64,000 nucleotides of DNA from Selaginella moellendorffii (lineage: Eukaryota; Plantae; Lycopodiophyta), in contig NW_003314401.1 in NCBI RefSeq assembly GCF_000143415.4, forward strand, positions 214,148 to 278,147, given 5' to 3'. The notes under the pieces were generated by a model. It did not search any database and was not told where the DNA came from. It saw only the letters and a list, made by a program, of their open reading frames with translations. Shown here in pieces: positions 2,658 to 51,779 of the stretch (positions within the stretch are counted from its first letter, which is position 1; every line of letters starts with the position of its first letter). Both the position numbers and the translations under genes were made by a program.

Positions 2658-5600
2658 ATGGCCTTCAGGGTTGGGGAAAAGGTTTACATTTTGAATGGTG
2701 GGAAGAGAGTTGCAAAAGGGACCCTTGTGTCTATGGATCGGAACTTTGTTATACACTGTGAAAGGCTTGGGGAAGGCAATGCTGCTGTATCAGTAGAGAC
2801 TGTCTTCGATGGGAATGTGGTCGCTATTGAACGAGGAGAGATGGTCGTCGGGGTAAATGTTGTTGTTGCCTTGAAAAATCTTCAGAAGAAAGCAGATGTT
2901 GGGGACAGCGCAAGTGCGACGCATGTTCCCTCCGTGGATCTTAAGAACCGTGCTACATGGATTCAGGCAAAAGTGTTTCTAAACAACCCCGAGGGGGAGG
3001 TGGTAGCTGAGGGCTTAGCCACAGTTGTCGATCCAAGAGATGCGGTTGCTAATCAAGAATTGGGCTGGGATGATATTGGAGTTGCGATTTTAGAGGTTGT
3101 TGACACAGAAGAAAACAGTCTGACTATTGGAAGCATTGTGCGGTGGAAATTGAGGCACTTAGTGTTTGAGAATGTGAAGGATTCACAATCAAACACCACT
3201 ACAACTGACGACAGAACATCTCTTCATGGGAAAAGAAAGTACACCTTCCTAAAGCGCAGCCAAAGGGATCTGAGCAACGAACCGAAAAGGCAGAAAATGG
3301 CGATGGAGGTTCGAATGGTCTCGACAGTTGCTTGTTGCAAGAGGAGGTGCTGTCAACATGCTGATTGGGATGCTATTGAAGAGGAGAGAGCAAGATACAA
3401 GACATTGTCCTGGAAGGCAGCTCGCAATTTTGTGTATGAGGCATTACGGTCATCTGTTGATGCTTCAGAACATCAGGTGGGGGGCATGGTCTTCCAGAGG
3501 GGTTTGGTCTGCATGAAGGCATGGAGAATCATTTATGGAGTCCCTCGAAGCACATTCTACAGAATCAAAACTGAGTTCGAGGAACAAAGGGTTCAACAGG
3601 CAGTCCATGGGAACGACGGTACGCACAAAACCAAGGGTCATGTTGTATATGGAGAGGCAATCTTCAAGAGGTTTGTCGAGACATGTAGCGAGCAGCAACC
3701 ACATAAAACCCGCCTCTTGGAAGATGGAACACGAGACACCCAACGAGTTCTCCCTTCCATGTATACCAAGGGGGCCATATTGGAAGATGTGAATCGGGAA
3801 CTCCAGAGTAATGGCTACAGGAAGCTGAGCCAATCTAGATTTAGTAGATTGTGGAGCAACAGGTTCAGGGATGTGAGTATAGGAAAGTACTCCAGCTTTT
3901 CAAAGTGTGACGAGTGCACTGCTATCAAAATGGCTTTGTCGAAGAATTCTTGCAGCGCTCAAGAGCGAGAGACGTTGGTTAGAAGGCGGCTCGACCACAA
4001 CATCGAGCAGAGAAGCTGCAGGACTGCATATTATCATAACAGGATTCTCTCCATGGAGAGACCTGACTCTTACCTCTGCATCATCCACGACAAAATGGAC
4101 CAGAAAAAGACGTGCTTACCTCGACTCAATCCTGCCCCCAAGGCAATCTCTTCATCCATGCAGCTGCCTGTGTCTCTGTTTGGCATAATCGCTCATGGGC
4201 ATGGTGCCCAGAACTATGGGAACTTCTTTGTACCTCTATGGGGTGGCGGGGGTGCAAACATGATGATTGCGTCCCTAGCAAAACACTTAAGGTCTCTGCA
4301 AAGTGCGCAGACTGAGCTGAACGGCCAACCCTTGCATAAGGCCCTTGTCGATCGAACCCCATACAGGGTTCAGCTGGAGGAGGAGCAAAGGCTTGCAGTA
4401 TCGCGTGGGGCCCCATGCCATCCCAGTGAATATGTTGGCCGTCAGATTGTAGGGTTATCACGTGAGGCCTCATGCCATTCCGACGAGGCTGGTCGCCCGG
4501 TGAATGCACAGCCTCATCCAAACGAAGCAGAATCTCAAGGAAGTTCTTGCGGCCGATGTGGCCTTCCACCCCATCTTCTGCTCCAAACAGACAATGCTGG
4601 CAGTGAGAACAAAAACATGTACGTCTTCGCGTACTTGGCGATGCTTGTTGCCAAAGGCATATTTGAAACGGTTACACTTGGCTTTCTCATGGTTGGGCAC
4701 ACTCATGAAGACGTCGATGCCATGTTCAGTCACCTGGCAAAGTCCCTCCGGCGATCCAATGTCCTCACCCTCCCACAACTCTACGATGAATTCCAAAATT
4801 GCATCAAAGGCACTGTTGAAGCTGCACTTCTGACAGAGGTTCCAGACTTTAAGGGGTTTGTAAGAGGCTACATCAGGGATGGATCCGAAACGCTGATTGG
4901 CCACTCCAAGCCTCTTCAGTTTCATTTCAGCATGTGTGACGGTGCTCCAGTGATGAGGTACAAGATGAGAGAATAGGACACAGTGTGGCTGCCAGTGGAC
5001 GGCATTGAACTCTTCAAGAGAGATCCCATAACTGGGGAACCTATGATTCCTCAGGGTTCCCCACGGCCGATGCACCCGGATGGACTCAAAGACCAGGAAA
5101 GTATAGTGGCCGGGATTAGACAGCATATTGCCTTCTGGAAGAGGGGGTTGGTGTTTGGTGGAGAATCCTATTTTCAGAGGTGCAAGCCTTTGCTCGAATA
5201 CTGGGAGAAGATTATATCTGCTATCCAAAATGGGCCGGTTGTATATGAAGAATTGGAAGAGTCCTTTTGGCCAGAACCCAGAGCACCAGATAGTAGCGGA
5301 ACAATGTCCTCTGGAAATGCAGTGACAGATAACGATGTTGAGGATCACTATTGTGGGCCGAGGAACAAGAAGCCGGATTCAGCATTCAATCCAGTACAGG
5401 TCTGCAAAGGAATGGTCGTGCTTGTCAGACCCAGTAATAAAAAACAAATGATATGGGTGGGGCGCTGCATCACTGATGCAGAGGAGGACGCGGAAACTAA
5501 CTCCTTCAATGTAACTGTGGAGTGGTTCAAGCCAAGTTCCGGATATACGAAGGATTGCCTAGAAAAGAGATGGGTGCTGAATCCAAGGGATCCCAGCATG

Positions 5601-24256: not shown

Positions 24257-25770
24257 ATGGGTTCCAGCTCGCAGAGTGGAGACGAGGCCGCTGCTGCCGA
24301 TTCGAGTAAGCAGCAGCAGCAGCAGATGGGAATGCCCACTTGGCTCAACTCGGCTCTGTCGAGGCAAACAAGCTCTCAACAGCAGGCACAAGATCAGCAG
24401 CAGCAAGCCTGGCCGAATCCCTCGTCTTCGTCCTATACCAACTGGCTCTCTGCGGCTGGTGCTACTAGCACGGGTGTTAGGCGCCTCGAGCAGCAACAAG
24501 CTTCCGCTACCACCAACACAAGTCCGGCCACTGCTACTACCACCACCACCACCGAGTTGCTGGTGGAGCAAGACAGGAAAGCAGCAGTGGCGGCGGCGGC
24601 GATGCTCATGGGGGCGGTGGAAGCGGATGTGACCAGCCACGGCTCCGTTCCAGGTGACCCCGACTTGGACGAGTGTGCTGCTGCGCGCTACCAGATGAAT
24701 GCCGGGCTCAAAGCTGATATTGTCACGCATCCCTTGTACGAGCAGCTGCTCGAAGCTCACGTTGCCTGCCTCAGGATTGCCACTCCAGTCGACCAACTGT
24801 CGAGGATTGACGGGCAAATCTCCCAGTGCCACCACGCCATTGCAAAGTACTCCATTCTGGCCAACCACCAGCTATTGTGCGGGAGCAGCAAGGAAGAACT
24901 CGACCACTTCATGGTATTTCATCGTATTGATTGTTGGTGGTGCTTATTGTATGTTGTATCCAGGCTCACTACGTGATGTTGCTCAAGTCGTTCAAGGACC
25001 AGCTCCAGCACCACGTTCGCGTCCATGCCAAGGAAGCGGTGATGGCGTGCTGGGAGCTGGAGCAGTCGCTCATCAGCCTAACTGGTAATTCTCCACAGTT
25101 TGTGCCATGAAATTCATGAACCAATGTTCATAGGTGTAGTGCCAACCGCGTGTTGAAAAGCAGGAGCTGCGCCGGGGGAGGGTACGGGCGCAACCATGTC
25201 CGACGACGAGGACGAGCAGCAGCAGCCCCAGCAGGAGCAGCAGCAGCAGCAGCAGTCGGACAGCGATTACTGGCAGGACAATCTGGGATTCGGACCCCTC
25301 ATCCCCACGGAGACGGAGAGAACACTCATGGAGCGCGTGAGACAGGAGCTCAAGCACGAGCTCAAGCAGGTTCTTCTTTCTCTCGGATTCATCCTTTCCG
25401 ATCGAGTGACCCGACTTAAGCTTCTTGCAGGGGTATAGAGCGAGGATTGTGGACGTACGGGAGGAGATCCTCCGCAAGAGACGAGCCGGGAAGCTGCCAG
25501 GCGACACCACCTCGGTTCTCAAGGCGTGGTGGCATGCTCACTCCAAATGGCCGTATCCAACCGTGAGTTGACGCATTCTCAGCATTGCTGGATCATCGAT
25601 CTCACTAGGTAGAGATGTGGCAGGAGGACGAGAAGGCGCGGCTGGTCCAAGAGACCGGGCTGGAGCTCAAGCAAATCAACAACTGGTTCATCAACCAGCG
25701 CAAGCGCAACTGGCACCACCACCCATCGTCGTCCACAAACTCGTCCACCAAAGCCAAGTGCAAGAGGTGA
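24257..25770 (+). CDS. Class II KNOX homeodomain transcription factor (KNAT3/KNAT7-like), 5 exons
   Basis: Exons 24257-24913, 24964-25084, 25164-25369, 25431-25562, 25624-25770. KNOX1 [27 protein letters not shown] domain [10 protein letters not shown], homeodomain WPYPTE...[15 protein letters not shown]. Confidence 0.95.
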
Positions 25771-29840: not shown

Positions 29841-30487
29841 ATGTCTAGCGAGAAGAAGATCAAGAGGGCGCTGGTGGAGCAGCTGCTGGAAGCAAAGTCC
29901 CGGTCGGGCAAGACGCTCACGATGATCGCAGCCGAGACTGGGCTCACGAATGCGTATGTGGGGCAGCTCTTCCACCGCCAGGCTCAGCTTCACCCGGAAC
30001 AAGTGAGTCCCCTCCGGAATGCCGTGCCAGGGCTCTCGGATGAGCTCCTCGAGAAGATGCGAGCCCCCCCACTTCGCTCCTACGAACCGACCCTCATCCA
30101 GGATCCCACTGTTTATCGGTCAGTAGTATCTCGGACTTGGATTGCTTCTTTTTTGTGAATCCTGTGGTTCTCAGGCTGAACGAAGCTGTGATGCACTACG
30201 CCCAGAGCATCAAGGCCATCATCAACGAGGAATTTGGCGATGGCATGTATGTCATTGCCACCCTCTCGAGTCTTCTTTCAAGCTGTGGCTTTTGGGTGGC
30301 AGAATGTCCGCAGTTGGTTTCTTCTGCGAGGTGAACAAAATCCGAGGCAAAGAGGGTGAAGACCGGGTGCAAATCACGCTCAATGGGAAGTTCCTGCCTC
30401 ATATCGTTCAGGTAAGCTTGCCAAACACGCGTGCCAACCACTAGCTTTGCTTCTTCACAGTTGCAGGAAGACAACGTAAGCTCCTGA
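29841..30487 (+). CDS. CYN: Cyanate hydratase (cyanase), 4 exons
   Basis: [22 protein letters not shown]|[15 protein letters not shown]|MSA and [13 protein letters not shown], joined by GT-AG introns. Confidence 0.93.
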
Positions 30488-30602
30488 GCTATGGCGTTAA
30501 ACGGGGAAGGATAGATTGTTACGTAAGAGTGTTCTGCAAACAAAAGAAATAAAAGCGCTTGCGTTTGACAGATCTCACGAACCAAAACTTCGAGCAAGGA
30601 TT

Positions 30603-32336
30603 TCAAGCTCTCACAGGCAAATTCTCAGCGATGTTGCGAGCTAGTACGTAAGTTCGGGTTGCCAGAGGCTTTGTCCGTTCGATGGCTTGCTCGTACCTGC
30701 AGTATCAAGCTTGTTACAGCAGCGGGGGAGAATGCAAACACGATTTTCCACTTACACGTCCGTGTGCTGCACGCCCATGACAACCGTTCCATTCTTCGAA
30801 TCGATCTTGGCATCGAGCCTGGAAAAATTGATGAGGTTGGCGATCCAGCGCTCGGCATCGTCGTAATTCATGTGAAGCTTGTCAGACAGCATCCTGAGGA
30901 TCCCACAAAAAGAAAACAAACATTAGTTACAAGCCATCACTTCCAGGAACACTTTTACCCAATGTCAATCCTTTGATGGATTTTGCAGTATGTCTCGAAC
31001 ATTGCCAGGCGTGCGTTCTCCAAAAACTCGTCCCTGAACTTGTACACAATGTAGCCGTTGTCCGTTTCCGGACGCCCAAGGAAGAAGTCATTCAGGATGA
31101 GCTGCAAAGCAAACAAAAACGGATGAAGAGAGCGGTGGGAAGCAAAGCGGCACTCACATCTTCACACTCTTGGAGCTTCCGTTGAGCTCCTTCAAAGTCG
31201 TAGTTGACGTAGAGGCACTCGAGGAACTCGGTGATGGGATCCCTGTAAGTGTGATGCTCCTGCTGGATCACCTTGATGAAGTCCTTTATGTTCCCGCGAT
31301 GCTTCCTCTTGCAGACCACAAAGGCAGCAGCGAGGTACCTCAGCAGATGGTGTGCATGCGTTTGTATCACATGAAGGTATCTGGTGACACAGAATGAGTG
31401 AGGTACTCTGAGAAGCCAAAACACAAACTTTCTTTTCCCTACACTCACCTATCATTCATAAACAAGTCGATGAGACTATGCCTCCCACTTTCGAGGTTGA
31501 AGTACACAAAGAGGCTCCAATGCATGAGCCACACTCGATTTTGCACTTGGACAAGCGGCGATGAAAAATTCTGCAAAGAGGACAAGAAACAAAAACATTT
31601 CTTTGTAAGTAGGAAAGAAAACGTAAAACTACCTTAGAATCCATGGCTTCCTTGAGCTTTCCAAGCTCGTATTCTGCACCGCTCCAGTTTTGCATCAGTA
31701 TCTCGGCTGCAAACTTGCCCCACATTGCACTGTAAGCCTTTTCGCTGTTGATGGTCAAGGTCCGATACTGGTAGAGAAAATCCGCGGCTCCCGAGTAGTT
31801 GCCACACTCAAACTGGAACTTTGCGTATTGGTAGAGCGCATCGATGTGCTCGGGACCAATCTGCGAAGAAGAAGAATGGTGGTGCTCAGCCTAAACTCAC
31901 AAGAAACCAAAGAAACAAAGTACCTGGTACCGGTCGTGAAGCATCTGGAGATTGGCTTGCCTCTCGGGCTTGAGCTCCGCGGTCATTTGCGGGTTTTGCA
32001 GGAAGGCGATCAAGGGAGCCGCCAGATCCTCGAGGGCCTTGAGGCGATTCACAACCTCGGCACGCCTGTCCATCATCTCTGCGAGAAGAGCGAACGGGAA
32101 ATGGGCATTGGAGCGCGAAATGGAGGCCGCCTACCTTTGGGGACCTCGTCGTAGAGGCTGCGGTGGATGTCCATCATGTAGTCGACCATGTTGGTCTTGG
32201 CCAGCAGCTCGATCTTGGCCTTGAGAATCTGGTCATTGGGATAGATCCCCTTGTCCTGGAGGAACTCGAGCAGCGGGAACACCAGATGCCTGTCCAGGAA
32301 GGGCGCAATCTTGAGCGTCTGGTCGAACTGCGCCAT
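30603..32336 (-). CDS. EIF3E: Translation initiation factor 3 subunit E, multi-exon
   Basis: [48 protein letters not shown] and [22 protein letters not shown]. Confidence 0.95.
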
Positions 32337-32351
32337 AGCCGTCGTGACCTA

Positions 32352-32366
32352 AAACCCTAACCCTAG
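32352..32366. promoter_or_regulatory. Telo-box (AAACCCTAA) in the 34-bp gap between the eIF3e and PPR start codons
   Basis: AAACCCTAACCCTAG. Telo-boxes are typical of plant translation-machinery genes. Confidence 0.7.
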
Positions 32367-32370
32367 AAAA

Positions 32371-33862
32371 ATGGAATGCCGCTGGCACTGCTTTGCCGCG
32401 CTGGGCTATGGTGGAGGCGATCACGCCAGGACGAGCGGCAGCGGGCAGCTCGCCAGGATGAGATTTGTGAGGGGGAGGAGGGCCGATCGATCTCTCTCCA
32501 GCCACCAGCAGCAACAGCAGCAGCAGCAGCAGCGGCAACCGGCCGTGATGAGCATTCTCCACGAGCTCCAAGACAAGAAGAGCAGCAAGAGCCACGTCCT
32601 GGACAAGTACGCGAGGCATATTCCCGTGGATGGATTCATGGCGCTGGTGGACGAGATTGGCAGGCTCAACGACTGGGCGCTGGCGCTCGCGGTTAGTTCA
32701 TCGTGCTCGATCAAGCGAGGTTTTGATGTGTTTGTCATCGCCACAGCTCTTCAAGTGGCTGCAAAAGAATGAGGCGCGGCTGAGCAACCGGGACCTTGAG
32801 GTGGCGCACGCCAAGATCATCGACACCATGGGCAAGCAGGGGCAGCTGCGGCTGGCGTCGTGGATCTTCTCGCAGCTCCAGCTCTCGTCCAGGACCACGC
32901 CGGTGTTCAATGCCATCATCATGGCTCACCTGAGGTGCAAGAACGTTGCGCGAGCGCTGGACAGCGCGCTGGATCACTTCGGCCACATGAAGACGAGCGT
33001 CCACTCGTGCCCGAGCCTCGCCACGTACAACATGCTCACCCGGGCGTGTGCGCAGGCCGGGCTCACGGACAAGGCCGAGGCGCTCTTCCTGGAGCTCCTG
33101 CGCCGAGACGATCTCAAGCCCGACGCCTACACTTTCAACGGAATCATGGACGCCTACGCCAAGAAGGGGCTGTACCGCGACATGGAGTACAAGCTCAAGG
33201 AGATGAGCGAGCATGGCGTGAGACCGGACCTTGTCACCTTCAACGTCCTCATCGATGCTTACGGCCGGGCGGGAGACTTTGTCAAGATGGAGCGGACTTA
33301 CAAGTCGCTCGTCAACTTGTCCGGGTGCAAGCCCTCGGCCACCACTTTCAACTCGATGCTGGCGAGCTACGGGCAGTCGCGGGAGCTGGGAAAGATGGAG
33401 CAAGTGCTGGTGAGGATGGACATGGCGGGCCTCGGCCCCGACCTGACCACCTTCAACACGCTCATGAGCTCCTATGGCCGGGCTGGGGAGCTGGACACGA
33501 TGCGAAAGTGCTTCGACAAGATGGTGCGGTCGCCCGTCAAGCCGCAGGTGTCCACCTTGGACGTGCTGCTGCGGGCCTACGCTGAACACGGCCTGGTGGA
33601 CGAGGCCGAGGCGCTGTTCATCAACGCGTCCAAGCTCGACATCAAGCCCGCCGTGTCCTCGTACCTCATACTGTTCAAGGCCTATGGGGAGGAGCGGCAG
33701 CTGGACAAGATGACAGTGCTTATGTCCAAGATGGAGCAAAGCGGAGTGGAGTCGGGTCAAGAGTTTTTGCTGCAAGCACTAGAATCTTATGCGGCCACGC
33801 CTCATCCCACTACTGCTCCTCCGGTGATCGAAGATAAAGATGATAATCAATCAAGCCTCTAA
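32371..33862 (+). CDS. PPR5: P-class plastid PPR protein, PPR5/EMB2453-like; one intron ~32692-32745
   Basis: 35-aa repeats. LDKY, KIIDTMGKQGQLRLASWIFS, FNAIIMAHL, PDAYTFNGIMDAY and KMERTYKSL parallel Arabidopsis PPR5 as recalled. Confidence 0.8.
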
Positions 33863-34273
33863 GTGTATCATATGTTCCAACGTCACATTCCATAAAATCC
33901 CGGTGATCATGTCCATATTTCCCACGCCACTCGTGACTCACACACACTCTCACACTGGCACACGCATACATACATGGAGTTGAAAAGTCTATAGAGCTTA
34001 TAGTTTAGCAATGGTTCTCCCGAGAGTTGTATCTTAGATGCGGTATATCAAAGTCGAAACTCCCAAGAACAGGAGACTTTTTTAATATGTTTGCTGCACT
34101 GCCCTGTCCCTATAATGCTCGCCCCGCTCTGTACAATGCGGAGATGTAAACTGGAGAACACATATAACACTTTGAAGAGGATGATAATTGCGCGTGGCCC
34201 TCACACTCTATAGTACATATCTTGGGCACTCTTGAGCTCGAATTCGGGTAGAGAAAAAAAAGAGAGGCCTGGA

Positions 34274-34707
34274 TCAAGGATCCACATCGTAGATGTAATC
34301 TATATGATCAGCAGGCACCGGAGCTTTGTCAGCCAGCTCTCGAGCAACACGATCGGAAGCTGTTTTGGATTCCTCGCACTTGACTTGCGCCTTCAGCTGC
34401 TGCGTTTTGTCATGAAAACCAACATGTGTTTGACATGAGATCAAATTCAAAGCAGGCCTCGAATCAGATTGTGTATGTATATTACCACACTCGCAGCATC
34501 CAAGTCCTCCTTCTCAGCTAGGATCTCTGCTGCTTCCACTGCATCCTTCTTGTTTTCTAGTACTGCACAACACAACGCAAGACGAATCCGTGAGTCAGGA
34601 CTCGTTTCTGCCGCAGTATTACTGCATTCACCTGGTGGAAGAGGCCGGGCGAGAACGTCGACAACTAGCAGCAAGGAAAGAAACAAGAGGCTGCAGCGAA
34701 TACCCAT
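34274..34707 (-). CDS. Secreted phytosulfokine-like peptide precursor, 92 aa, 3 exons
   Basis: Exons 34707-34632, 34562-34486 and 34399-34274 with phase-consistent GT-AG introns. Signal peptide ends VLA-RPLPP, middle is acidic, C-terminus is ADHIDYIYDVDP*. TATAAAA at ~34863-34870. Confidence 0.8.
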
Positions 34708-36336
34708 GACTAGTAAGATTCAAACTACGGTTTCAAGAGATTGATCTTACAAAGCAGTATAGAGAGAGAGAGAGAGAGAGAGGAGAAAGCGAGAAGAGAA
34801 GGAGGAACGCCCCGTGTAGTTAGCGAACGAAGAAGCAGCAAAACATCCATCCAAAATGCGCCCTTTATAAAGGGTGCATCCAGCCGTTGGAAGGGGCAGG
34901 CTCTCCACCGTCGGATGGGCTAGTCGAACGTTGACTGGCGGCGGTCGCCCCGATCACCGACGGTCAGGAAGGACGGGGTAGGGAGCTTTCTTTGCGTTTT
35001 GCGCTGGGCCTGCAATTCTTCGTCTCTCCTTCTTCTTTGTTCCGGAAGTTGGGCAGTTGACTTTGAGATTATCTGTCTGTCACAACTGGGAGCTTGGGGA
35101 TGGCTCATTGACTTTTCGCCGGTACATACGCCACACACAGCATCACCGATACGTATGCGCCCGCGTACACTGGCCAGGGATTGACATTTGCCTGGGCTCA
35201 AGGGCGTACTCTCTAATCGCCCTCTCACACCTTCACATTGTCCGGCTAACCGGGGATCCATTTCCAGAACAGGTCCATTCCAGCTACAGGAGTATACGGG
35301 GATGGGAGCTCTTGTTTGAACAAAATCAAGGAAGAAAGTGATTTGATTTGCTTGTTTCAAAAGTCAGTCGAGTAAATGACGTGCTACAAAACAGGTGGAT
35401 ATACTACATATGCCTGGGGTATTTGTAAGCAGATTGGCGGTTTTACAGGATTTGATTTAGAGGAGGGTTTATAAGTAAGTCCATTGTGGCCGTGGCAATA
35501 AACTCAAGAGCTCCATTGTTGAGGTGTGTTTCGAAGAAGCCAGGTAGATACCTTTTAGTGTGCATAAGGAGCTGAAGCTCTTAGCTCAGATAGTAGGAGG
35601 ATTGGCGCTACTAGAAAATGAGCTAGTGAAGACGTTTGGCAGCTGAGAATTAGGAATTCTTTGTAAATTTTTTATAAGGGAATGATGCTATGTACATACA
35701 GACGCAAATCAAATTCAAGCTCAAGGAACAAAGTGTAAGTGAGTGTGTATACAAACAAATCACGAGTAATGTAGCTGCGTTCTCAGATTTTTAGTATACC
35801 TAATCCACATGTAATAATAAATATACGTTAAATTTTTACAAAAATCCTACAATATAGTGTTGCTATTAGAGTGTTTATTCTCGTACGATAGCTTGTCTTC
35901 GTTTCTATTCACCATAAATTCAGTTCTAAATTTAAATTATTTCTCATACTCACACCTTGAAATCTTCATACATATCTCTACTTCCATATTTATTTTAAAT
36001 TTTTTCATGTCCATGGTCTAAAAATAAGCATATAAACATTGTTACATTTTTTTTAATTCTGGTTCTAACTTTGATCTTGGGGCAAGTTTCAAGGCGCTCT
36101 AGCCTAGGTGCTTTCCAAGGCTGGGATAAATGGATGATCGGATCGCTCAGCCACTATGCAGCAAGGGAGCACAAGGCACGCGTGCATCCTAAAGGACCCA
36201 AAGGACTAACGATTTCTCACGTCATCATTCCTCGTGGTGCGTAGTGTTGACAATTCGCTGCTACTGCTGCTGCTTGTGTCATTCATGGAGCTTTTCACTT
36301 CTTTCCAGACGTGTCCTGCGTATGAAGTGATGGAAG

Positions 36337-38496
36337 ATGGCCAAGCTCCAAGTGTGTCCCATCCCAGACGATCCCAATTCCTACGCCGAGGCCTTCAAGC
36401 TGTGCACCAGGACAAAGAACCTCGCTGCCGGCCAACGCCTGCACTCGCTATTCGCACAAAGCCAGCACTGTGGGAACATCTACGTGTGCAACATGATCGT
36501 GGAGATGTACAGCAAGTGTGGAAGCCTAGAAAACGCGAGAAAGGTCTTTGAGAGCTTGGCATGCCCCAACGTCTTCTCCTGGAACATTATTGTCTCTGCA
36601 TATGCCCAACACGGGCATATGCTGGAGGCCGAGCTTTTATTCCAGAGAATGCCTCGTCGCGATCTTGTTTCTTGGGTGGTCATGGTGGTAGCCTACTCTC
36701 GGGAAGGAAGCTGCAAGAGCGCAAAAGAAAAATTCGACAAGATGCCAGAGAGAGATTTCATTGCATGGGTGGCTCTCATCTCTGTGTATGCTGCCTGCGG
36801 CCAGCTATATGAGGCAGTCACCCTCTTCAATCTGATGCCAGAGCGAAACCTGGTTGCGTGGAACGCCATGCTGCAAGCGTACTCTCAAAACAGCGATATT
36901 GCAGGAGTCAAGCTAACCTTCGATTCTATGCCACAGAGGGATGTTGTGTCGTGGACGACTATGGCTGCAGCGTATGCCCGGGAAGGGCAAGTGGACAAGG
37001 CAACAGTAGTGTTTGACGGCATGCCAGAGCGAAATGTGGTTTCCTGGAACGCAATGCTTGCTGCATATTCATCTCAGGAAGATGATCCAGAATCGGGAGA
37101 TATGACTCAGGTGAGGGAGCTGTTTGATGCGATGCCGGAGAAAAACTTGGTGTCGTGGACCAGCTTGATTGCAGCGTATGCCAGGTACGGACATGTTGAC
37201 AAGGCCCGCAAGGCATTTGATGCTATGCCGGAGACATGCGTTGCGGCTTGGAATGCGCTGATACAGGCATACGTTCGAGTTGGAGAGGTGGAAATGGCTG
37301 TGAGAGTTTTCGAGAGCATGCCGCAGCAAGACATGGTGTCGTGGAACGCGATGATCGCAGCTCATTCCCAGCACGGCGACATGACAAGGGCGAAAGATCT
37401 CTTTGACAGAGCCCCTCGGCGGAACTTAAGGACGTGGAACACTATGATCACTGCCTACGCTCGGGAGGGCAATATTCGCGAGGCAGAGGCACTCCTCGAC
37501 AAGATGCCGGAACAGGACGTGGTGACGAGGAGCAGCATGGTCGGCATGTACGCCGACGCTGGTGACTTAAGGGTGGCACGCCGTGCGTTTGACAGCATGC
37601 CGCTGCGCAACCGGGTGGCGTGGAATGTGCTTGTCCAGGCCTACTCGCAGGCTGGCGACGTTGTTGCGGCCAAGGCGCTGTTTGACGAGATGCCGGAGAA
37701 GGACGTGGTCACCTGGAACGCGCTGCTTGCCGGGCATGCGCACAACGGGGATCTGGACACGGCACGAGAGTTGCTTCTGCAGGAGATGCCGGTGCGGGAC
37801 GTGATATCGTGGAACTTTGTGATCCAGGCGTATGCCCAGAGCGAGCAAGGCGAGGAGGCATTGCAGCTGGTGCGGGCGATGGATATGGAGGGTTTTCAAG
37901 GTGACAGAGTGACGCTGGTGAGCGCCCTCGAGGCCTGCGCCAGCGTGAGGCTGGTGTCCCAGGGGAGAATCGTCCTCTCCAGCTTTGGAGACGCCTACGG
38001 ATCGGAGCTCGTTACGGGCGACACGTTGGTGTCCAATGCCGTGATCAGCATGTATGGGAAGAGCAGCCATCTGAGGGAAGCAAGGGTGACGTTTGATAGG
38101 ATGCCGGAACGAGACGTGGTGTCTTGGAGTGCTCTCATTGCCGCAAATGCCCACAACGGACAAGGCGCTGCGGCGGTGGAGGTTTTCAGTGCAATGGGGG
38201 TGGAGGGCATCATTCCCGATCAAGTGACAATGCTGAGCGTCCTCTTCTCGTGCAGCCACGGGGGCCTGCTGGACAAGGGGATGCGCTACTTCATGGGCCT
38301 GGCGAGTGACTATGGGATAAGCCACTCGAGCGAGCACTACCACTGCATGCTGGACGTGTTGGGGCGGGCGGGACGGAGCAAGGATGCTCGGGAGCTGCTG
38401 CTTACAATGCCGTTTCTTCCCGGTGGTGTGGCATGGACCACGCTGCTTGCAAACGAGCTCAACTCCGATCAACGACGAAGCCCCAGTCTCCCTTAG
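36337..38496 (+). CDS. PLS-class PPR protein (RNA-editing-factor type) ending in a truncated E domain
   Basis: Many 31-aa MPERN/DVVSWNAM repeats, VLFSCSHGGLLDKG, HYHCMLDVLGRAG and WTTLL followed by early termination. No DYW domain. Confidence 0.92.
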   Translation: MAKLQVCPIPDDPNSYAEAFKLCTRTKNLAAGQRLHSLFAQSQHCGNIYVCNMIVEMYSKCGSLENARKVFESLACPNVFSWNIIVSAYAQHGHMLEAELLFQRMPRRDLVSWVVMVVAYSREGSCKSAKEKFDKMPERDFIAWVALISVYAACGQLYEAVTLFNLMPERNLVAWNAMLQAYSQNSDIAGVKLTFDSMPQRDVVSWTTMAAAYAREGQVDKATVVFDGMPERNVVSWNAMLAAYSSQEDDPESGDMTQVRELFDAMPEKNLVSWTSLIAAYARYGHVDKARKAFDAMPETCVAAWNALIQAYVRVGEVEMAVRVFESMPQQDMVSWNAMIAAHSQHGDMTRAKDLFDRAPRRNLRTWNTMITAYAREGNIREAEALLDKMPEQDVVTRSSMVGMYADAGDLRVARRAFDSMPLRNRVAWNVLVQAYSQAGDVVAAKALFDEMPEKDVVTWNALLAGHAHNGDLDTARELLLQEMPVRDVISWNFVIQAYAQSEQGEEALQLVRAMDMEGFQGDRVTLVSALEACASVRLVSQGRIVLSSFGDAYGSELVTGDTLVSNAVISMYGKSSHLREARVTFDRMPERDVVSWSALIAANAHNGQGAAAVEVFSAMGVEGIIPDQVTMLSVLFSCSHGGLLDKGMRYFMGLASDYGISHSSEHYHCMLDVLGRAGRSKDARELLLTMPFLPGGVAWTTLLANELNSDQRRSPSLP

Positions 38497-39767
38497 GACC
38501 GGCTAAATCTATCGAGGGTGCTTTTCGATCGCGCCGACTTGAGCTTGATCCGCGCCTGCCTTCCGCCATGAGGGTCGCAGGGGGAGCCTTGCAGATGCGT
38601 CGGATTCATCCACCATCGAGAAAAGAAACGTATTCCATTCATCCATGCATTAATCAATGTTACTGGTTCTTTCGGATTAGGATTTGCGGAATTCCCTTCT
38701 CTACTACACAGCAACAAGATTGCGACATTCTTCCTCATAGGTGACCACTTTTTACCTCGCCTAGTCTTCGGCTAAACATCCATTCTTGCTGGTGGATAGT
38801 AGTTACAGTGATCGAGTATCAACCGGGCATCACAGCAGTAGAACGTGATCATCTTTCCTGGCCACTTTTCGGATGGACGGTGTTCTCATGGTGGAGGTGA
38901 GTAAATCTATAATGATAATGGATAATGGGAATAACGTCGATTTATCGTTGTCAAGAAGCTTACGCTGGCCAAAAATGTTGGTAATGGGATCGAATCAGCC
39001 AGGAAAGGCTCGATGTTCAAGAACTCGAGATAGCATTTTCCACGCTTTGGATAATAAAATAGTGTTTAGTTTAGCACAAGTCTTCCTGGAAGAAGGCATG
39101 GATGGAGACCAGCCATCCACATTGGCGCAGCAGCTCGGCTTGGATCAAATAATGAATTCGCGCGCGGCTTTTTGACCAATCCTGTCCTGCTCGCGTACAG
39201 GCAGAGGAGAGAGCAGACAGCCAAGAGCCTCCCGTGACCCCTAACTCTGAAACAGTGACTAATAGCCGATTTCCTAGCTATAGGCCTCACTCGCCCCGTC
39301 GCGCGCCACTCTTTTCTCCTCTCCTCTTGCTTGTCTTCTCACCTATAAGCCTTGTAAGCTTTTGAAATGGTGACTGCTCAACTGGTGGGTGTTGTGTCAG
39401 GCGGTGGCAGCTAAAGTGTGAATTGAGTGTACATCCATGTTCTCGCGCGCTTGCGCCCATGTGCAATCAAGCCAGCCATTGCAAGCGGAGCGAAGCAAAG
39501 GAATGCTCGCTGCCAATCCATCCTTTTCACCATCCCTCGGCCAGCCAGAGCGCATCGCATATATACTACTTTACGGGGCCAAACAAAGATTCCAACGACT
39601 TGGTAAAGGCTGGCACCGCGCAATGGCAAAAAGAGAAAGAGAGCGCCGCTTCTCTTGTAGCAACAGAGCTCCTCCCACTCAACCACGCACTCGCATTGGA
39701 CAGTGGCGCTCATAAAGCTTCCTGGCTGCTCGCACGACGGATAGATAGTTTATAAAGCCCCCAGAAG

Positions 39768-39800
39768 CGAAGAAGAAGAAGAAGAAGAAGAAGAAGAAGA
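39768..39800 (+). repeat. (GAA)n microsatellite in the PR-1 leader
   Basis: Direct reading; follows a TATAAA at ~39751. Confidence 0.85.
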
Positions 39801-39900
39801 GGTAGGCATTTGAAGCAGGGTCGTCTCGGGCTCTAGACAGATAGATACATAGATACATAGATAGAGACAGACACTTACACTACGTACATACATTCATGCT

Positions 39901-40425
39901 ATGAGATTCATGGTTGATCGAAGATACCACTGCGTGGTGGCCGTGTGCTACGTGCTGCATTGCTCGCTCCTGGCAGGCGCGAGCTACTGGCCGCCCCGAT
40001 ACAACGCATTCGTGGCGCAGTTCCTCTACGGCCAGAACCGAGCTCGCTACAGCGTGGGTGTTCCGCCGCTGGTGTGGGACAACCGGCTGGCAGCGTACGC
40101 GCAGTGGTGGGCAAACCAGAAGCAGGCGTCGGGCAACTGCTATCTCCAGCACTCGGGGGGTCCCTACGGCGAGAACATCTTTTGGGGGCGGGGCAAGCCG
40201 TGGAGCCCGTCCGAGGCCGTCGACGCCTGGGTGGACGAGCGCCGCTGGTATGACTACTACTCCAACTCGTGCCTCTTCAACGACGACTGTGGCCACTACA
40301 CACAGATCGTGTGGAGAAGCTCAACGCGGGTGGGATGCGCAAGAGTCACCTGTGCCGACGGGGATGTGTTCATGATCTGCAACTACGATCCCCCAGGGAA
40401 CTACATTGGCCAGAGGCCTTACTAG
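39901..40425 (+). CDS. PR-1-like CAP/SCP secreted protein
   Basis: Signal peptide, LQHSGGPYGENI, CGHYTQIVW and ICNYDPPGNYIGQRPY. Confidence 0.93.
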   Translation: MRFMVDRRYHCVVAVCYVLHCSLLAGASYWPPRYNAFVAQFLYGQNRARYSVGVPPLVWDNRLAAYAQWWANQKQASGNCYLQHSGGPYGENIFWGRGKPWSPSEAVDAWVDERRWYDYYSNSCLFNDDCGHYTQIVWRSSTRVGCARVTCADGDVFMICNYDPPGNYIGQRPY

Positions 40426-40553
40426 CTACCTCTCTCCAATTCTCATCTCGCGCGATCCACAGTCGCTCACTCAACTCTACACAGGGGGTGAGGGGTATTC
40501 ACAAAAACCACCTATGTCTCTCTCTCTCTCTCTCTCTCTCTGAGTCTACTGTC

Positions 40554-43500
40554 TCACATCTTGAACTCCACCTTGCCCGTCACCACGATTGGCTGCCGAA
40601 GCACCACTCGAGTAGCTTGGCCCTCCGCAGCTAGCTTGCCCAGCGATCCTGCCTCCTTGGGTGGCGTGCCAGGAGCGGTCCATAACTGTGCGGAACGAAG
40701 GTCAGTCCAGTGAAATAAAGAGAATCAAAGAAAAGAAAAAAAAAACTCACCGTGACGTGCGGCATTGGGTTTTTGGAAGCCACGCTTTTGCTGTCTAGCT
40801 GAGCCTCGAAAGCACACATCCTTGGGCAGTACAAGAATGCTGTGAACTTAACCGGCACTTCCGTCCCAACGTATGCGCCATACTCCGCCACCGCTGCCGC
40901 ACCGTGAGAGCGAACGTGCGCAAGTGTCACATGCCCGGCACGAAGGGTGTTGCTAAGATTCTTTGGAGCCAGAAACGCCTTTGCTCCGGCGTCTGCGCTC
41001 GATACCTGTAGCACAACCTGTGAATCCAAATTCGTCTCAAAACTTTAGGACACTTACCTTGGCCAGAGCGCTCAAAATGCCATCCACGGGTAAGGAGACC
41101 GCAGCGTAATTGAATGCACGAAACTTACGCTCCTGGGTATCTGGCATGTGAACTTGAACGTTGCCAGTAACCACATCACGAAGCTTCTCTCGAACAGATT
41201 TGACAACATCTTCGAAGGGAACCTGCAAGCGCACCTCTGTCATGACTAAACTACTGTCAATCGAAAAAACGGTTTTACCTGAATGCCACTTATGTGTGCC
41301 GAATGTGCAAGCATGGTGTCCTTCAGTTTTTTCTCCCATGCGTCCCACTCTCCCTTGAAGCTTCCCTTCGATGGATCCGCCCTGCGAAGCGGGAAACTTA
41401 GAATAACAACCACAAACCATCAGATGACTTACTTCCCATGCTTTGCGGCGTGTTTCCTGAACAGCTCAAGTCCTTCGTCGAGCACAGCTTTCAGAGGTCC
41501 CGGCAGAGGAGGTCTGGAATTCATGCGTCGTAACTCGCTTCCGGGAGAAATATAAAGGACAAGATTTTACCGATTCGGCTTCAACAAGGGAAATTTGATC
41601 AGATAGCCAAACCGCTTGTGTAGCTCCGCGTCAAATTCACTTCGATCCTATACACAAAATTATCGTGCTAGTAAGGAAAGAAAACAAAATGAAGAAAAGA
41701 AAAGGATACAGACCATCCCATCGTACAGGTTGTAGAACATCATAAGCACATATCCAGGATATAGGGAGTTTTTGTCAAGGTTGCCCTGCGACAAACAGGC
41801 AGTAAAGAAAAAGCAGCGCCTCAACATACGAAAGCATACCGGATGCTTCTCTCGGTGAAGTACTCGGAAAATAAAAACAGCAAGGGCATCTAAAGAAAAT
41901 GGATTTGAATCCGTGCCTGAAATAACCAGGATGATTAGAAGTTCCTCTGCTTATACAAGCCGTCAAACCTTCAGAGTCAGGAACTATGGGAACCGCAGTG
42001 GCATCAGTTGACTTGCAAATATCGGTCACCTGAAACGGTGCTTGAGTAGTAGTACAGGCTAAAAGAAAATACTTACCAGCTTCCACACATCCGCAGTCGG
42101 AGCATTCTTATCAGCCAGAGTAATTACGTTTGGATTTTTCTTTCTTTCCTCTTCAAGCTTCGGCCAGTAACGTCCTGCAACGAGATGACGCTCAATATTG
42201 AGTCAGTCGCTCATAGCAACGCCATACCCTTTATCATGTCTCCCATTAAGCTTTTCATCGGTCTTTTATCACCGATGCCACCTGGAGTGCTGATAATCTC
42301 ATTGCAAAGTGCAGATTTTGCGCACCCAGGTATTCCTACAAAGAGAAAAGTTGACGATTAAGCGATCCACGATAAACGATAGTAAGCAAGTACCAGGAAA
42401 AAACACGAGCAGCCCCTTAGCCTTGATGCCTTCATGGGAAATCGGCACATCCGGCGAAGCTCCAACGTCTTGTTTAAGATCACCTTCCTCGTCATCACCT
42501 TCACGAGATGCAGCTAGGTGCGCCGCGGTGTCGATATCAGTACCAGCTTGACCAACCAGTAGCTGGTTCTTTGTACTGCGACTAGCAAAAGCTTTCAGAA
42601 ACGGTTCGGCTTCTGAAAGATAGGACCCTTCTTTGAGCTTGCCAATCTTAATCTTTTGTGTGATGTGTGAAGCCCTGGAAAGCAAGAGGATGAGCAGCTG
42701 CAATCAGCGATTCTAACAAAATACCATTCATCCAACATCCTGGAAAGTTCTCGCTGCTTTTCCGCAGAAGTGCCCCAGATTTGCATTTGCCTGGCAAATA
42801 AACATAAGCTGAGCCCAAAACTTCGAATCCAAAGTACCTGAAATAATAGTCTTTATAACCCTGCTTCCCCTTATTAAACAGAATATCAATACCATTACGA
42901 ATAAGGAACGTACGAATCTGAAAGAGAGAAAAGACCATCCAGTTGAGGTTACCACATAAGAAGACAAGCAAAAAAGTGTTACCTTGTATGTCAAGAACTT
43001 CAATTTCACCATCAAGTGCTCAGCATCATCCGCCATTGCATCTTGGTCCAGGTGTCCCAAAGTCACTTCTTCCGTCTCATTAGAAGAAGAAGAATTGTTT
43101 TGCGAGTCTCTGGTTAACATAACATCCACAAAGAAACCTGTAGAAACATATAAAAGTCAGATGTTATGAAGTTTCCTTGTTAAAAAAACCGGACCTCTGT
43201 ATAAAGGCCACAGGCTTGGATTGTACCTGCACAGAAATTATTAGAGAATGCGGCAGAAAGAAAATCACATACTGCATCTCCTTCTGATATCTTCTAAATA
43301 CAGAGTCTTGTAGTACATGAATAGTCATTGTGAACTCGTTCTCCGAGCCTTGGCGAGACTGACATTTAAACTTCACCCGCATATTTTTTTGGCGTAGCAA
43401 GTTCACCATTTCCTGCCCATAGAAGTTTAGAGGCAGAACAAAAGAACATAGTGGTACCTGAAGTTTAGCTGTGGGATCATCCGCAGGAGGTGTTTGTAGA

Positions 43501-45306
43501 AATTTGTTTAGCCACGCTGTCTGAGCAGCATCTTTTTCCTTGTCAAACCATGCATTCCAGTCCGAGCAAAAGTCGGTGCCAACAGCCTTCAAAAGAGCCT
43601 TGCTTTGCTGAAAAATTGGACGACATGATCATTAGTCCGCACGTCAAGAGCTACCCTGTACCTCTTTCTCAGACTGCCTGTTTGCCATGCATATTTCACG
43701 GAGACCAGGCGCAGTGTAAGCACCTGCAAGAGCTCGATCGTAAACATACCGATCAAAACTGAAGAAATACATTTACCAGGTGCATGATCTGGAACAGGAT
43801 ATTTCTCAGCGACAAGCTTTAGCTTCTTGCCACTTTCAAAAGAAACGATACGAGCAACCAGTCCCTCCAGTATTTCCCCTTGCACTACGGCATGACTTTC
43901 GGTGCCTACACCACAAGAAGGAAACATTCAAGAGAAACGCAAGTAGAGGAGCAACAAATACCTGGGACAGTCGCATCTGCAATTTTGTTGAAGTTGTCGC
44001 GGACAAGCGTATAAATGCTCTGCTCACATAAGACGTCGTAAGCCGCGAAACACGTTGAAGCGGACTTCCTGACGAGAAATTCATTCGCAATGACAGATCA
44101 AGTAGATCGTAAACATACCTTGTGGAGAATAACCACACCTCATTCGTAGGAAGACGCCACTTCCTGCAGAATTCCACAAGATCGGGGGTAGAAAAAAATC
44201 TGGGACGGCCTGTAAGCTCTGTTACTGCTGTCACCACCACTGTTCATGTAACAAGGTAGAAGTCAGTGCCGTTGTTACAAGAATAACAGACATCAGACCG
44301 TAATCTTTGAGAGGCCTTTGACCGTGATCACCAAGCACAGCCGTCACAAGTTCCATGGAGATTGAAATACGGTGTTCCTGGGAAATAAAAATCAGTTTGA
44401 CATGATACCATTGGCAAAAACCCTGAGCAAACCTTAAGGTATGCATTGAATTCTCTCTGCTTGGCTTTGGCTTGATCGCCCCATGCTTGTTCGAGTGTTT
44501 TTCCCAGAACATACACACCAACAGCCGTATATCTGGCACAAACAAAAAACAAACTACGTGAAAACCACGCCAAGAGTAAACCGCCTTACAGATTTCCATA
44601 GCTGTTTTTCGCGAAAGCCTGTCCATCACCAGCGTACATAAACAGGGATCCAGAATGTTTCAAGGTGACCTACACAACCCTGGATAAGCAAGCTTCTTTT
44701 CATTGCTCGGGAACTCACCTCCACAACACCTCTGCCGGAAGCCACCACCTCGATCATCCTACTTCGGATCTACCAAGACAATTCTATAAACCAAACGAGT
44801 AGAAAGACAAGGCAGTACCTCTTGATCGGACTTTTCATTCTCAAACTTGGGATAGAAGGTGGCCCGAACTTCCGACTTGACTTTGGTCTGGCCCTTTTTG
44901 GCGGGATAGGCCGTCTCGGTCATGGGCTCGGCCACGGCGGCCTGCGAGGAGGGACGCTGTTGCTGCGCAGATGTGGAGATTGTTGCCTTTGGCACCCAGA
45001 CAGTAGCACCGTCGCTGTCGGCGGTCTTGGCTTTTCGCCCGCGCTGTGAAGGCATCTTCCTCTTCATACAAACACAGGACTAGGTTAACCTAAATGCCAA
45101 GGCATGCACAGCTTATATACCTCGTCACTCGCAATCACTTGCCATAGCTCACGCCGCGGCACCGATGGCAGGGACAGCGCCGGGAATCTGGCGCCGAATG
45201 GCACGCAATGCCTCCAGAGATGGGGGGCGAGAGTGGGAGAGTGGCAGAGCGGGGAGGAAGAGACACGGAAGAATGAGGAGATGCCCTTGCCTCGGACGCC
45301 TTTCAT
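40554..45306 (-). CDS. RNL: Plant tRNA ligase (ligase/kinase/cyclic phosphodiesterase), many exons
   Basis: VRATFYPKFENEKSDQE, ISMELVTAVLGDHGQRP, GEILEGLVARIV, GLLVFFPG|IPGCAKSALC, HVTLAH and PHVT. Confidence 0.92.
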
Positions 45307-50878: not shown

Positions 50879-51250
50879 GCCACAACTTCTACTGCCTCTG
50901 GATGACACGCTATCTGAAGAGCAAAAAAAAGCAAACACAAGAGAAAAAAAATATGAGAAAAAACAACTGAGCAAATTGAAGTACCTGTACAATTCCTTCG
51001 TCCCCAACGACAATCTCTGGATTTTCGTCAAGATCAGCAATGGCTTCTTTTAATTCGGTCTCGAATCCCAACCATGCTTGGTTTGAATCTCCTGACCTGT
51101 TGATTGGCAGTGTAAGCTCGTATAAACAGATACGACGGCTGACCAATTCGTAGTTTACCTGATCAGCAACAAGTGTAACGTTTGAGCCAGCAGCCAGGCC
51201 AACAACTTTGAATCTGTCAGGGTTTTCCGAGATGATGTCAAGTGTGTGGC
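50502..51250. pseudogene. DXR: DXR (1-deoxy-D-xylulose 5-phosphate reductoisomerase) fragment with introns, split by an inversion
   Basis: Minus strand: [29 protein letters not shown]...[11 protein letters not shown]. Plus strand: GMVGCASLK|PTVAAIAAGKDIALANKE. Confidence 0.88.
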
Positions 51251-51779
51251 ACAACACCACGTTAGCATCCTCATCGCTTGCATAGGAAACGAAGGAAAAC
51301 AGGGATTCTAACCTGTGTGCCGATGGAGCCCGTGGATCCAAGAAGTGAAATGGGCTTTGGTCCATCCCAGGATTTTTTCCTAGCTCCATCCACCATTGCT
51401 CTGGCCAAGCTGAGGGAGGATCATTTGACGAGCAGCGTATCTTAGAGGAACCAGCATTTCTTGGGTACTCCTGCGTACTGGAGGAGGTACCACATTGAGC
51501 GCCTGCAAACATGCACGAATGAGCACTGTCGCTGTCGAAAACGTGTCTCACGCACCTGTTACTGCCAATTTCCTTCCTGTGAAACACGACCTGGAGCTCG
51601 AGCTCAGCTGCTGCAAATCCCCCTAGAAAGAAATTTCCACATCCATGAGAAATCCCAGCTCCAGAAAAGCATTTGCTAAAGACAGCCTCCAAAGCCATCG
51701 GCAGCTCCCAGAAATCACTAGACGCGCGGTCAATCGCTCGGAATATCGCAGCGGCAATGCATACAAACCAAGAGCCCTA

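Follow-up and report, generated by a model that had tools for sequence, protein, structure and literature searches.

A candidate three-exon gene for a phytosulfokine-type sulfopeptide precursor with a non-canonical YIYDV motif in the lycophyte Selaginella moellendorffii

Does a lycophyte genome encode a peptide hormone of the phytosulfokine (PSK) type? The question is raised by a short locus on the minus strand of the 64-kb stretch of Selaginella moellendorffii DNA analysed here, the whole of which we call the window. Precursors of PSK are 80-120 aa long and start with a signal peptide; the pentapeptide stands close to the C-terminal end, with a conserved Asp, needed by TPST, at -1, and beyond the pentapeptide and this Asp the precursors "share little similarity" (PMC10796568). 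The known plant PSK variants differ only at positions 2 (I/V) and 5 (Q/N) (PMC10796568, PMC13081851). According to one review, "basal plants" have yielded no PSK (PMC10796568), and another describes PSK as an innovation of vascular plants (PMC13091385), while Furumizu et al. 2021 reported putative PSK orthologues only in P. patens, M. polymorpha and P. abies (PMC8462819). The sulfotransferase TPST is reported from S. moellendorffii (PMC8462819). An initial annotation of the window proposed that the locus hides a three-exon gene for a PSK-like precursor in which YIYDV takes the place of the usual pentapeptide. As far as the sequence can tell, our analysis leans towards this view, namely that S. 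moellendorffii has a three-exon gene, uncalled in GenBank, for a secreted precursor of 92 aa from which a PSK-type sulfopeptide with the non-canonical YIYDV would be released.

In-silico splicing of the minus strand joins three exons (34707-34632, 34562-34486 and 34399-34274) through two GT-AG introns, and gives a string identical to the one proposed in the initial annotation. The spliced coding sequence of 279 nt, translated with a local script, encodes 92 aa that begin MGIRCSLLFLSLLLVVDVLARPLPPV and terminate in DHIDYIYDVDP followed by the stop. Exon 1 (34632..34707, minus strand) has 76 nt from the ATG, an ATG-started run of 25 codons plus 1 nt, and encodes the signal-peptide-like stretch MGIRCSLLFLSLLLVVDVLA (residues 1-21, 34707-34645) and then RPLPP. 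It is followed by intron 1 (34563..34631), a phase 1 intron of 69 nt that reads CAG/GTGAAT...TTGTGCAG/T, and by exon 2 (34486..34562; 77 nt), which encodes an acidic, variable pro-region (VLENKKDAVEAAEILAEKEDLDAASV). Intron 2 (34400..34485; 86 nt, phase 0, GC 0.37) reads GTG/GTAATA...AACGCAG/CAG. Exon 3 (34274..34399) consists of 41 codons and the TGA (34276-34274), and carries Cys59, the sequence RELA and HIDYIYDVDP (34306-34277), within which DYIYDV (34300-34283) represents residues 85-90 of 92. The acceptor of intron 2 is a NAGNAG (cag/cag, 34397-34402, minus strand), where use of the second AG would drop Gln52 and keep the frame.

The last exon is missing from the list of open reading frames, as the initial annotation had pointed out, because the 58-aa TTG-started ORF that contains it (34274-34450) falls below the default listing limit of 60 aa. 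The frame of exons 1 and 2 hits a stop inside intron 2, at 34449-34447, and therefore the motif is reached only when intron 2 is removed. Translation through intron 1 meets no stop and keeps the frame, and retention of this intron would give a product of 115 aa. In such a case, always or sometimes, the locus would be a two-exon gene whose precursor has three extra Cys (28, 46 and 47); the exon-like GC of intron 1 (0.51) and the fact that 115 aa is still inside the range of PSK precursors are in line with this structure. Against it, the intron 1 donor CAG/GTGAAT is the best in the locus (6/8 consensus positions), its acceptor is a pyrimidine/G-rich CAG, and its codons score well under those of the exons. 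A log-odds score of codon usage, for which the two PPR genes of the window served as training set, reached +16.7 bits in the spliced frame vs -7.0 and -65.0 in the other frames; per codon, the values were +0.37 bits for exon 2, +0.18 for exon 3, -0.72 for intron 1 in frame, and -0.18 or -0.52 for intron 2. These scores favour the three-exon model over the retention of intron 1, which we hold to be very unlikely, a judgement that concerns structure only, is compatible with PSK-type and non-PSK readings alike, and lies outside the sum of the probabilities given to those readings.

The gene model employs the two best donor sites of the locus, and introns this short are normal in the S. moellendorffii genome, given that the annotated neighbouring PPR gene has a GT-AG intron of 54 nt (32693-32746). 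However, 51 different single GT-AG introns also yield an ORF reaching the motif, and thus splicing compatibility alone is weak evidence. The ease with which it is obtained belongs to the case for a non-functional locus, either a chance combination of ORFs or a decaying sequence that is not expressed. The initial annotation came from a screen of thousands of windows, in which rare chance events are expected, and this also counts in favour of such a locus. We consider it quite unlikely, nevertheless, and the frame-specific codon signal that separates exons from introns is one point against it. Chance was further assessed in 150 simulated Markov-1 windows of 64 kb. The six frames of the window contain a single DY[IVLM]Y; in the simulations, DY[IV]Y lying in an open frame with a stop at most 12 codons away was present in 2.7% of the 150 windows, and none of them (0/150) had it together with His at -3, or together with a signal-peptide-like ATG ORF no more than 900 nt upstream (0/150). 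A putative promoter element also argues against a non-functional locus: the TATA-like box TTTATAAAG (34863..34871, minus strand), with its function read from the sequence, stands at the sensible distance of ~155 nt upstream of the ATG.

Between this box and the ATG lies a (CT)n tract (34760..34783, minus strand), presumed to belong to the 5' leader. It has microsatellite matches at other places in the window, and no other part of the locus does. The other allele carries a 4-nt insertion inside the tract, at ~34765. The same interval holds a 41-aa ATG ORF (34725-34850, minus strand), which would be an uORF if transcribed; it may precede the transcription start, because its ATG is only ~21 nt downstream of the TATA box. 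A plus-strand gene at the locus is unlikely, since only TTG/GTG-started ORFs without features are found there. No paralog was detected within the 64-kb window, and Rfam gave no match at 33000-36500.

Positions 30337-44496 of the window are base-for-base identical to the GL377705.1 locus of assembly GCA_000143415.2, and the second haplotype is represented by GL377728.1, with the same gene order. The GenBank annotation has no gene call at the locus on either haplotype (GL377705.1, GL377728.1), a point in favour of a non-functional locus; the flanking PPR genes are called on GL377705.1. It is known, though, that annotation routinely misses small peptide genes (PMC8462819). The allelic copy on GL377728.1 lies at positions 4315-4748 of the region GL377728.1:160304-180828 (reversed), and the two alleles were compared in an alignment of the 2.5-kb intergenic region. 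In the gene body (434 nt) there are no indels and four substitutions, all of them exonic: two conservative replacements, V15A and N29K, and two synonymous changes, at A20 and L73. Both introns, all splice sites, HIDYIYDVDP and the stop are identical in the allele, and so are the TATA-like box and its surrounding 26 nt. The flanks (2,040 nt) differ between haplotypes by 27 substitutions and 16 indel events, so that 3.4 indels would be expected in the gene at the flank rate vs 0 observed (Poisson P ~0.03). A locus whose ORF, splice sites and motif are free of indels amid such flanks fits poorly with a decaying sequence. The substitution rate is not clearly lower in the gene (0.9%) than in the flanks (1.3%), and the ratio of nonsynonymous to synonymous changes between alleles is 2:2, which makes dN/dS uninformative and leaves a non-functional locus the benefit of the doubt on this point. 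The ORF is intact on both haplotypes, yet these differ too little for selection to be demonstrated.

The two haplotypes are collinear over positions 29901-50425 of the window, through genes for a cyanate lyase, an eIF3 subunit, two PPR proteins, a CAP protein and a tRNA ligase-like protein. The CAP/PR-1 gene (39901-40425, plus strand; PF00188) is intronless and encodes a protein of 174 aa that is identical on both haplotypes. Between the PPR genes, the intergenic DNA of the two haplotypes has an identity of only ~95.5%, with 16 indel events in 2.5 kb; one haplotype indel of 10 nt (TCTTGGGCAC, plus strand) falls at 34220-34229, in the presumed 3' UTR. Gene models disagree for the neighbouring PPR gene (32458-33862, plus strand). 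Its ORF is 100% identical to SELMODRAFT_135826 of S. moellendorffii, a protein of 449 aa with the 54-nt intron at 32693-32746; the gene call of the assembly index is longer, with 478 aa on this haplotype and 480 aa on the other, and the longest ATG ORF has 410 aa. Exact-protein look-ups gave no record for this ORF or for its annotated form, whereas the 719-aa protein of the second PPR gene was found on GL377705.1 and the CAP protein on GL377728.1. Elsewhere in the window, an ORF with a KNOX1 domain (24257-24976, plus strand; Pfam E 1e-18) presumably belongs, as one exon, to a KNOX homeobox gene of class I/II, an ORF at 50910-51698 (minus strand) that weakly resembles the N-terminal region of DXP reductoisomerase (E 8e-7) is probably a DXR exon, and a 772-aa ORF at 2658-4976 (plus strand; DUF7869, E 5e-42) is consistent with a transposase.

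The initial annotation expects ARP after the signal peptide of PSK precursors and more than one Cys in the pro-region. In the predicted product, by a rule-based reading, residues 1-21 would form an N-terminal signal peptide, with MGIR, one basic residue, a hydrophobic core of 12 residues and VLA before Arg22; Val at -3 and Ala at -1 satisfy the -3/-1 rule. Kyte-Doolittle hydropathy averages +1.82 over residues 1-21 vs -0.49 over the remainder. The remaining 71 residues are acidic, with 17 D/E vs 9 K/R, and Cys59 is the sole Cys after the signal peptide, in keeping with the single pro-region Cys counted in the initial annotation; this low number speaks against a PSK-type precursor. Only two Tyr are present, Tyr86 and Tyr88, both of them within the motif, and the first is directly preceded by Asp85. 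The length of 92 aa and the position of the motif near the C-terminus, where six residues follow DY, agree with those of PSK precursors. The canonical pattern Y-[IV]-Y-T-[QN] is matched at positions 1-3, and positions 4-5 differ: TQ is replaced by DV, as the initial annotation had read, and Asp-Val corresponds to no described plant PSK, so that its contrast with YIYTQ, YVYTQ, YIYTN and YVYTN holds. The sequence R-E-L-A starts 16 residues upstream of Tyr86 and possibly fits RxLx, the pre-processing motif of S1P-type subtilases (PMC13082318).

Homology searches were carried out exon by exon, with exon 3, its 58-aa ORF and the 86-aa ORF of exons 1-2. None of the three had a PSK match in Pfam, PF06404 included, at E<=10; all that appeared was sub-threshold noise (Bee_toxin, DUF2188) on the signal-peptide ORF. 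A word-indexed search of 5.8 billion clusters, from a collection of 15 billion proteins that includes some transcript assemblies, gave no match for the 58-aa or the 86-aa ORF, an outcome that also suits a non-functional locus. With exon 3, phmmer found 0 matches at E<=0.001 among 1.84 billion representative proteins, and the ESM Atlas gave no usable match. This missing homology carries little weight for or against, given that PSK precursors hardly resemble one another beyond the pentapeptide and the Asp in front of it. In the literature, YIYDV had no match in ~8.4 million full texts and YIYDF had one unrelated match.

The same searches bear on another explanation, in which this is a real secreted-peptide gene, lycophyte-specific and sulfated or not, that is not a relative of PSK and came by its DYIY through convergence. 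The product could then act through another receptor or have no hormone role, and the mature form could be a C-terminus of 7-8 residues or a YIYD freed by two Asp cuts. The lack of detectable homology to PSK precursors in the exon-wise searches agrees with this explanation, even if undetectable homology is expected among true PSK relatives as well. So do residues 4-5 and a fixed tail of two residues that ends in Pro, unlike PSK, whose tails vary. Moreover, the four residues DYIY are few enough for an independent origin, and the sulfopeptide families PSY, RGF and CIF also begin with DY (PMC8462819). A metagenome scan with the back-translated HxDYIYDxxP-stop gave one match, on contig Ga0316604_10007237 (3943-3975, minus strand). 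It was dismissed as chance, because the 52-aa ORF that holds it, on this AT-rich contig of bacterial origin, is antisense to a likelier gene, and it hints at the background rate of the bare motif. On the other hand, the length, the position of the motif, Asp at -1 and His at -3 are all compatible with PSK, and the mature peptides of the other DY families have 13-21 residues, more than the short C-terminal end found here would allow. We therefore regard an origin outside the PSK family as unlikely.

The reading that we prefer, a PSK-type precursor, can be set beside the systems already known. With the PSK of seed plants (alpha YIYTQ, and in legumes gamma YVYTQ, delta YIYTN and epsilon YVYTN; PF06404), the Selaginella product has in common a signal peptide, a length of ~80-120 aa, a variable acidic pro-region, a motif few residues from the C-terminus, Asp before Tyr1 and the Y-I-Y core. 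His at -3 is shared with AtPSK4, which reads HTD-YIYTQ (RRSLVL/HTD) (PMC13082318). The differences are Asp-Val, instead of Thr-Gln or Thr-Asn, at positions 4-5, the lack of a PF06404 match in the exon-wise searches, and the three-exon structure of a gene that comes from a lycophyte. The claim of a PSK-like precursor was thus borne out in its architecture, in Asp at -1 and His at -3, and in its preservation on both haplotypes, and it is weakened by the lack of exon-wise homology and by positions 4-5. The suggestion that the peptide is ancestral found no support in anything examined.

The bryophyte PSK-like sequences (YIYTSQ in Marchantia and Physcomitrium) resemble the Selaginella product in the YIY core near the C-terminus and in the small secreted precursor, and were likewise found by motif, with a putative function; they are without the Asp before Tyr1 that sulfation requires, whereas Selaginella has this Asp and has lost Thr-Gln (PMC8462819). 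Closer at position 4 are the PSK-like effectors of root-knot nematodes, DYIYDN (theta) and DYVYDN (omega), whose silencing reduces galling (bioRxiv 2026 preprint, PMC13081851). They too have a signal peptide, a variable propeptide, a C-terminal motif and the change from Thr4 to Asp, and theta has the same D-Y-I-Y-D core. In contrast, they are animal genes thought to mimic the PSK of the host, and position 5 is Asn in the effectors and Val in Selaginella. The PSY, RGF/GLV/CLEL and CIF/TWS1 peptides are also made as secreted prepropeptides whose mature peptide, close to the C-terminal end, opens with an Asp-Tyr sulfation site, but their mature peptides of 13-21 residues contain Pro/Hyp and have a terminal His-Asn or similar.

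If the product is of the PSK type, its maturation may be envisaged as follows. The signal peptide would be cut after Ala21, and in the Golgi the tyrosylprotein sulfotransferase (TPST) would sulfate Tyr86, whose -1 position holds the Asp that the enzyme needs, and probably Tyr88 as well. Subtilases would then free a short peptide from the C-terminus, cutting at its N-terminal side between Asp85 and Tyr86, by analogy with the Asp-specific phytaspase SlPhyt2, which cuts tomato PSK at EAFLD/YIYTQ (PMC13082318). At the C-terminal side, a cut before Asp91, as made by SBT3.8 on AtPSK1 (YIYTQ/D; PMC13082318), would give sYIsYDV, and no cut would give sYIsYDVDP. Given the Asp on both sides of YIY, two cuts by Asp-specific subtilases might also produce the tetrapeptide sYIsYD. 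The disulfated peptide would signal extracellularly through a PSKR-like LRR receptor kinase; a literature search found nothing published on a Selaginella orthologue of PSKR.

In the angiosperm complex, the main contacts of the ligand are its two sulfates and the C-terminal carboxylate (PMC11211552). In AtPSKR1, the sulfates contact Lys508 and Asn424, the carboxylate contacts Arg300 and Asn346, and there is packing on Tyr3 and Gln5 (PMC11211552). By analogy, we infer that the five-residue sYIsYDV would keep the main determinants of AtPSKR1 binding. Taken together, these receptor contacts, the cut sites at the flanking Asp85 and Asp91, RELA and the nematode precedent for Asp4 suggest that the DV change at positions 4-5 could still be functional. 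A broader proposal, which we put forward tentatively and consider doubtful, is that a Y-I-Y-D core, represented here by YIYDV, marks a class of disulfated PSK-type hormones peculiar to lycophytes. Under this proposal, PSK-type signalling would be older than seed plants, and Asp4, until now regarded as nematode-specific, would be a plant variant of ancient origin.

Reviews confine PSK to seed plants or to vascular plants (PMC10796568, PMC13091385), and the bryophyte candidates are without the Asp. A lycophyte gene with an intact D-Y-I-Y core would fill this gap in non-seed plants, and the locus would be a further case in which standard annotation has missed a small peptide gene. If our reading is true, the gene would provide a testable ligand for studying the co-evolution of PSK and PSKR, and would indicate that Thr4 and Gln5 are not essential to the ancestral signal. 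The "nematode-specific" DYIYD effector classes would also be seen in a new light.
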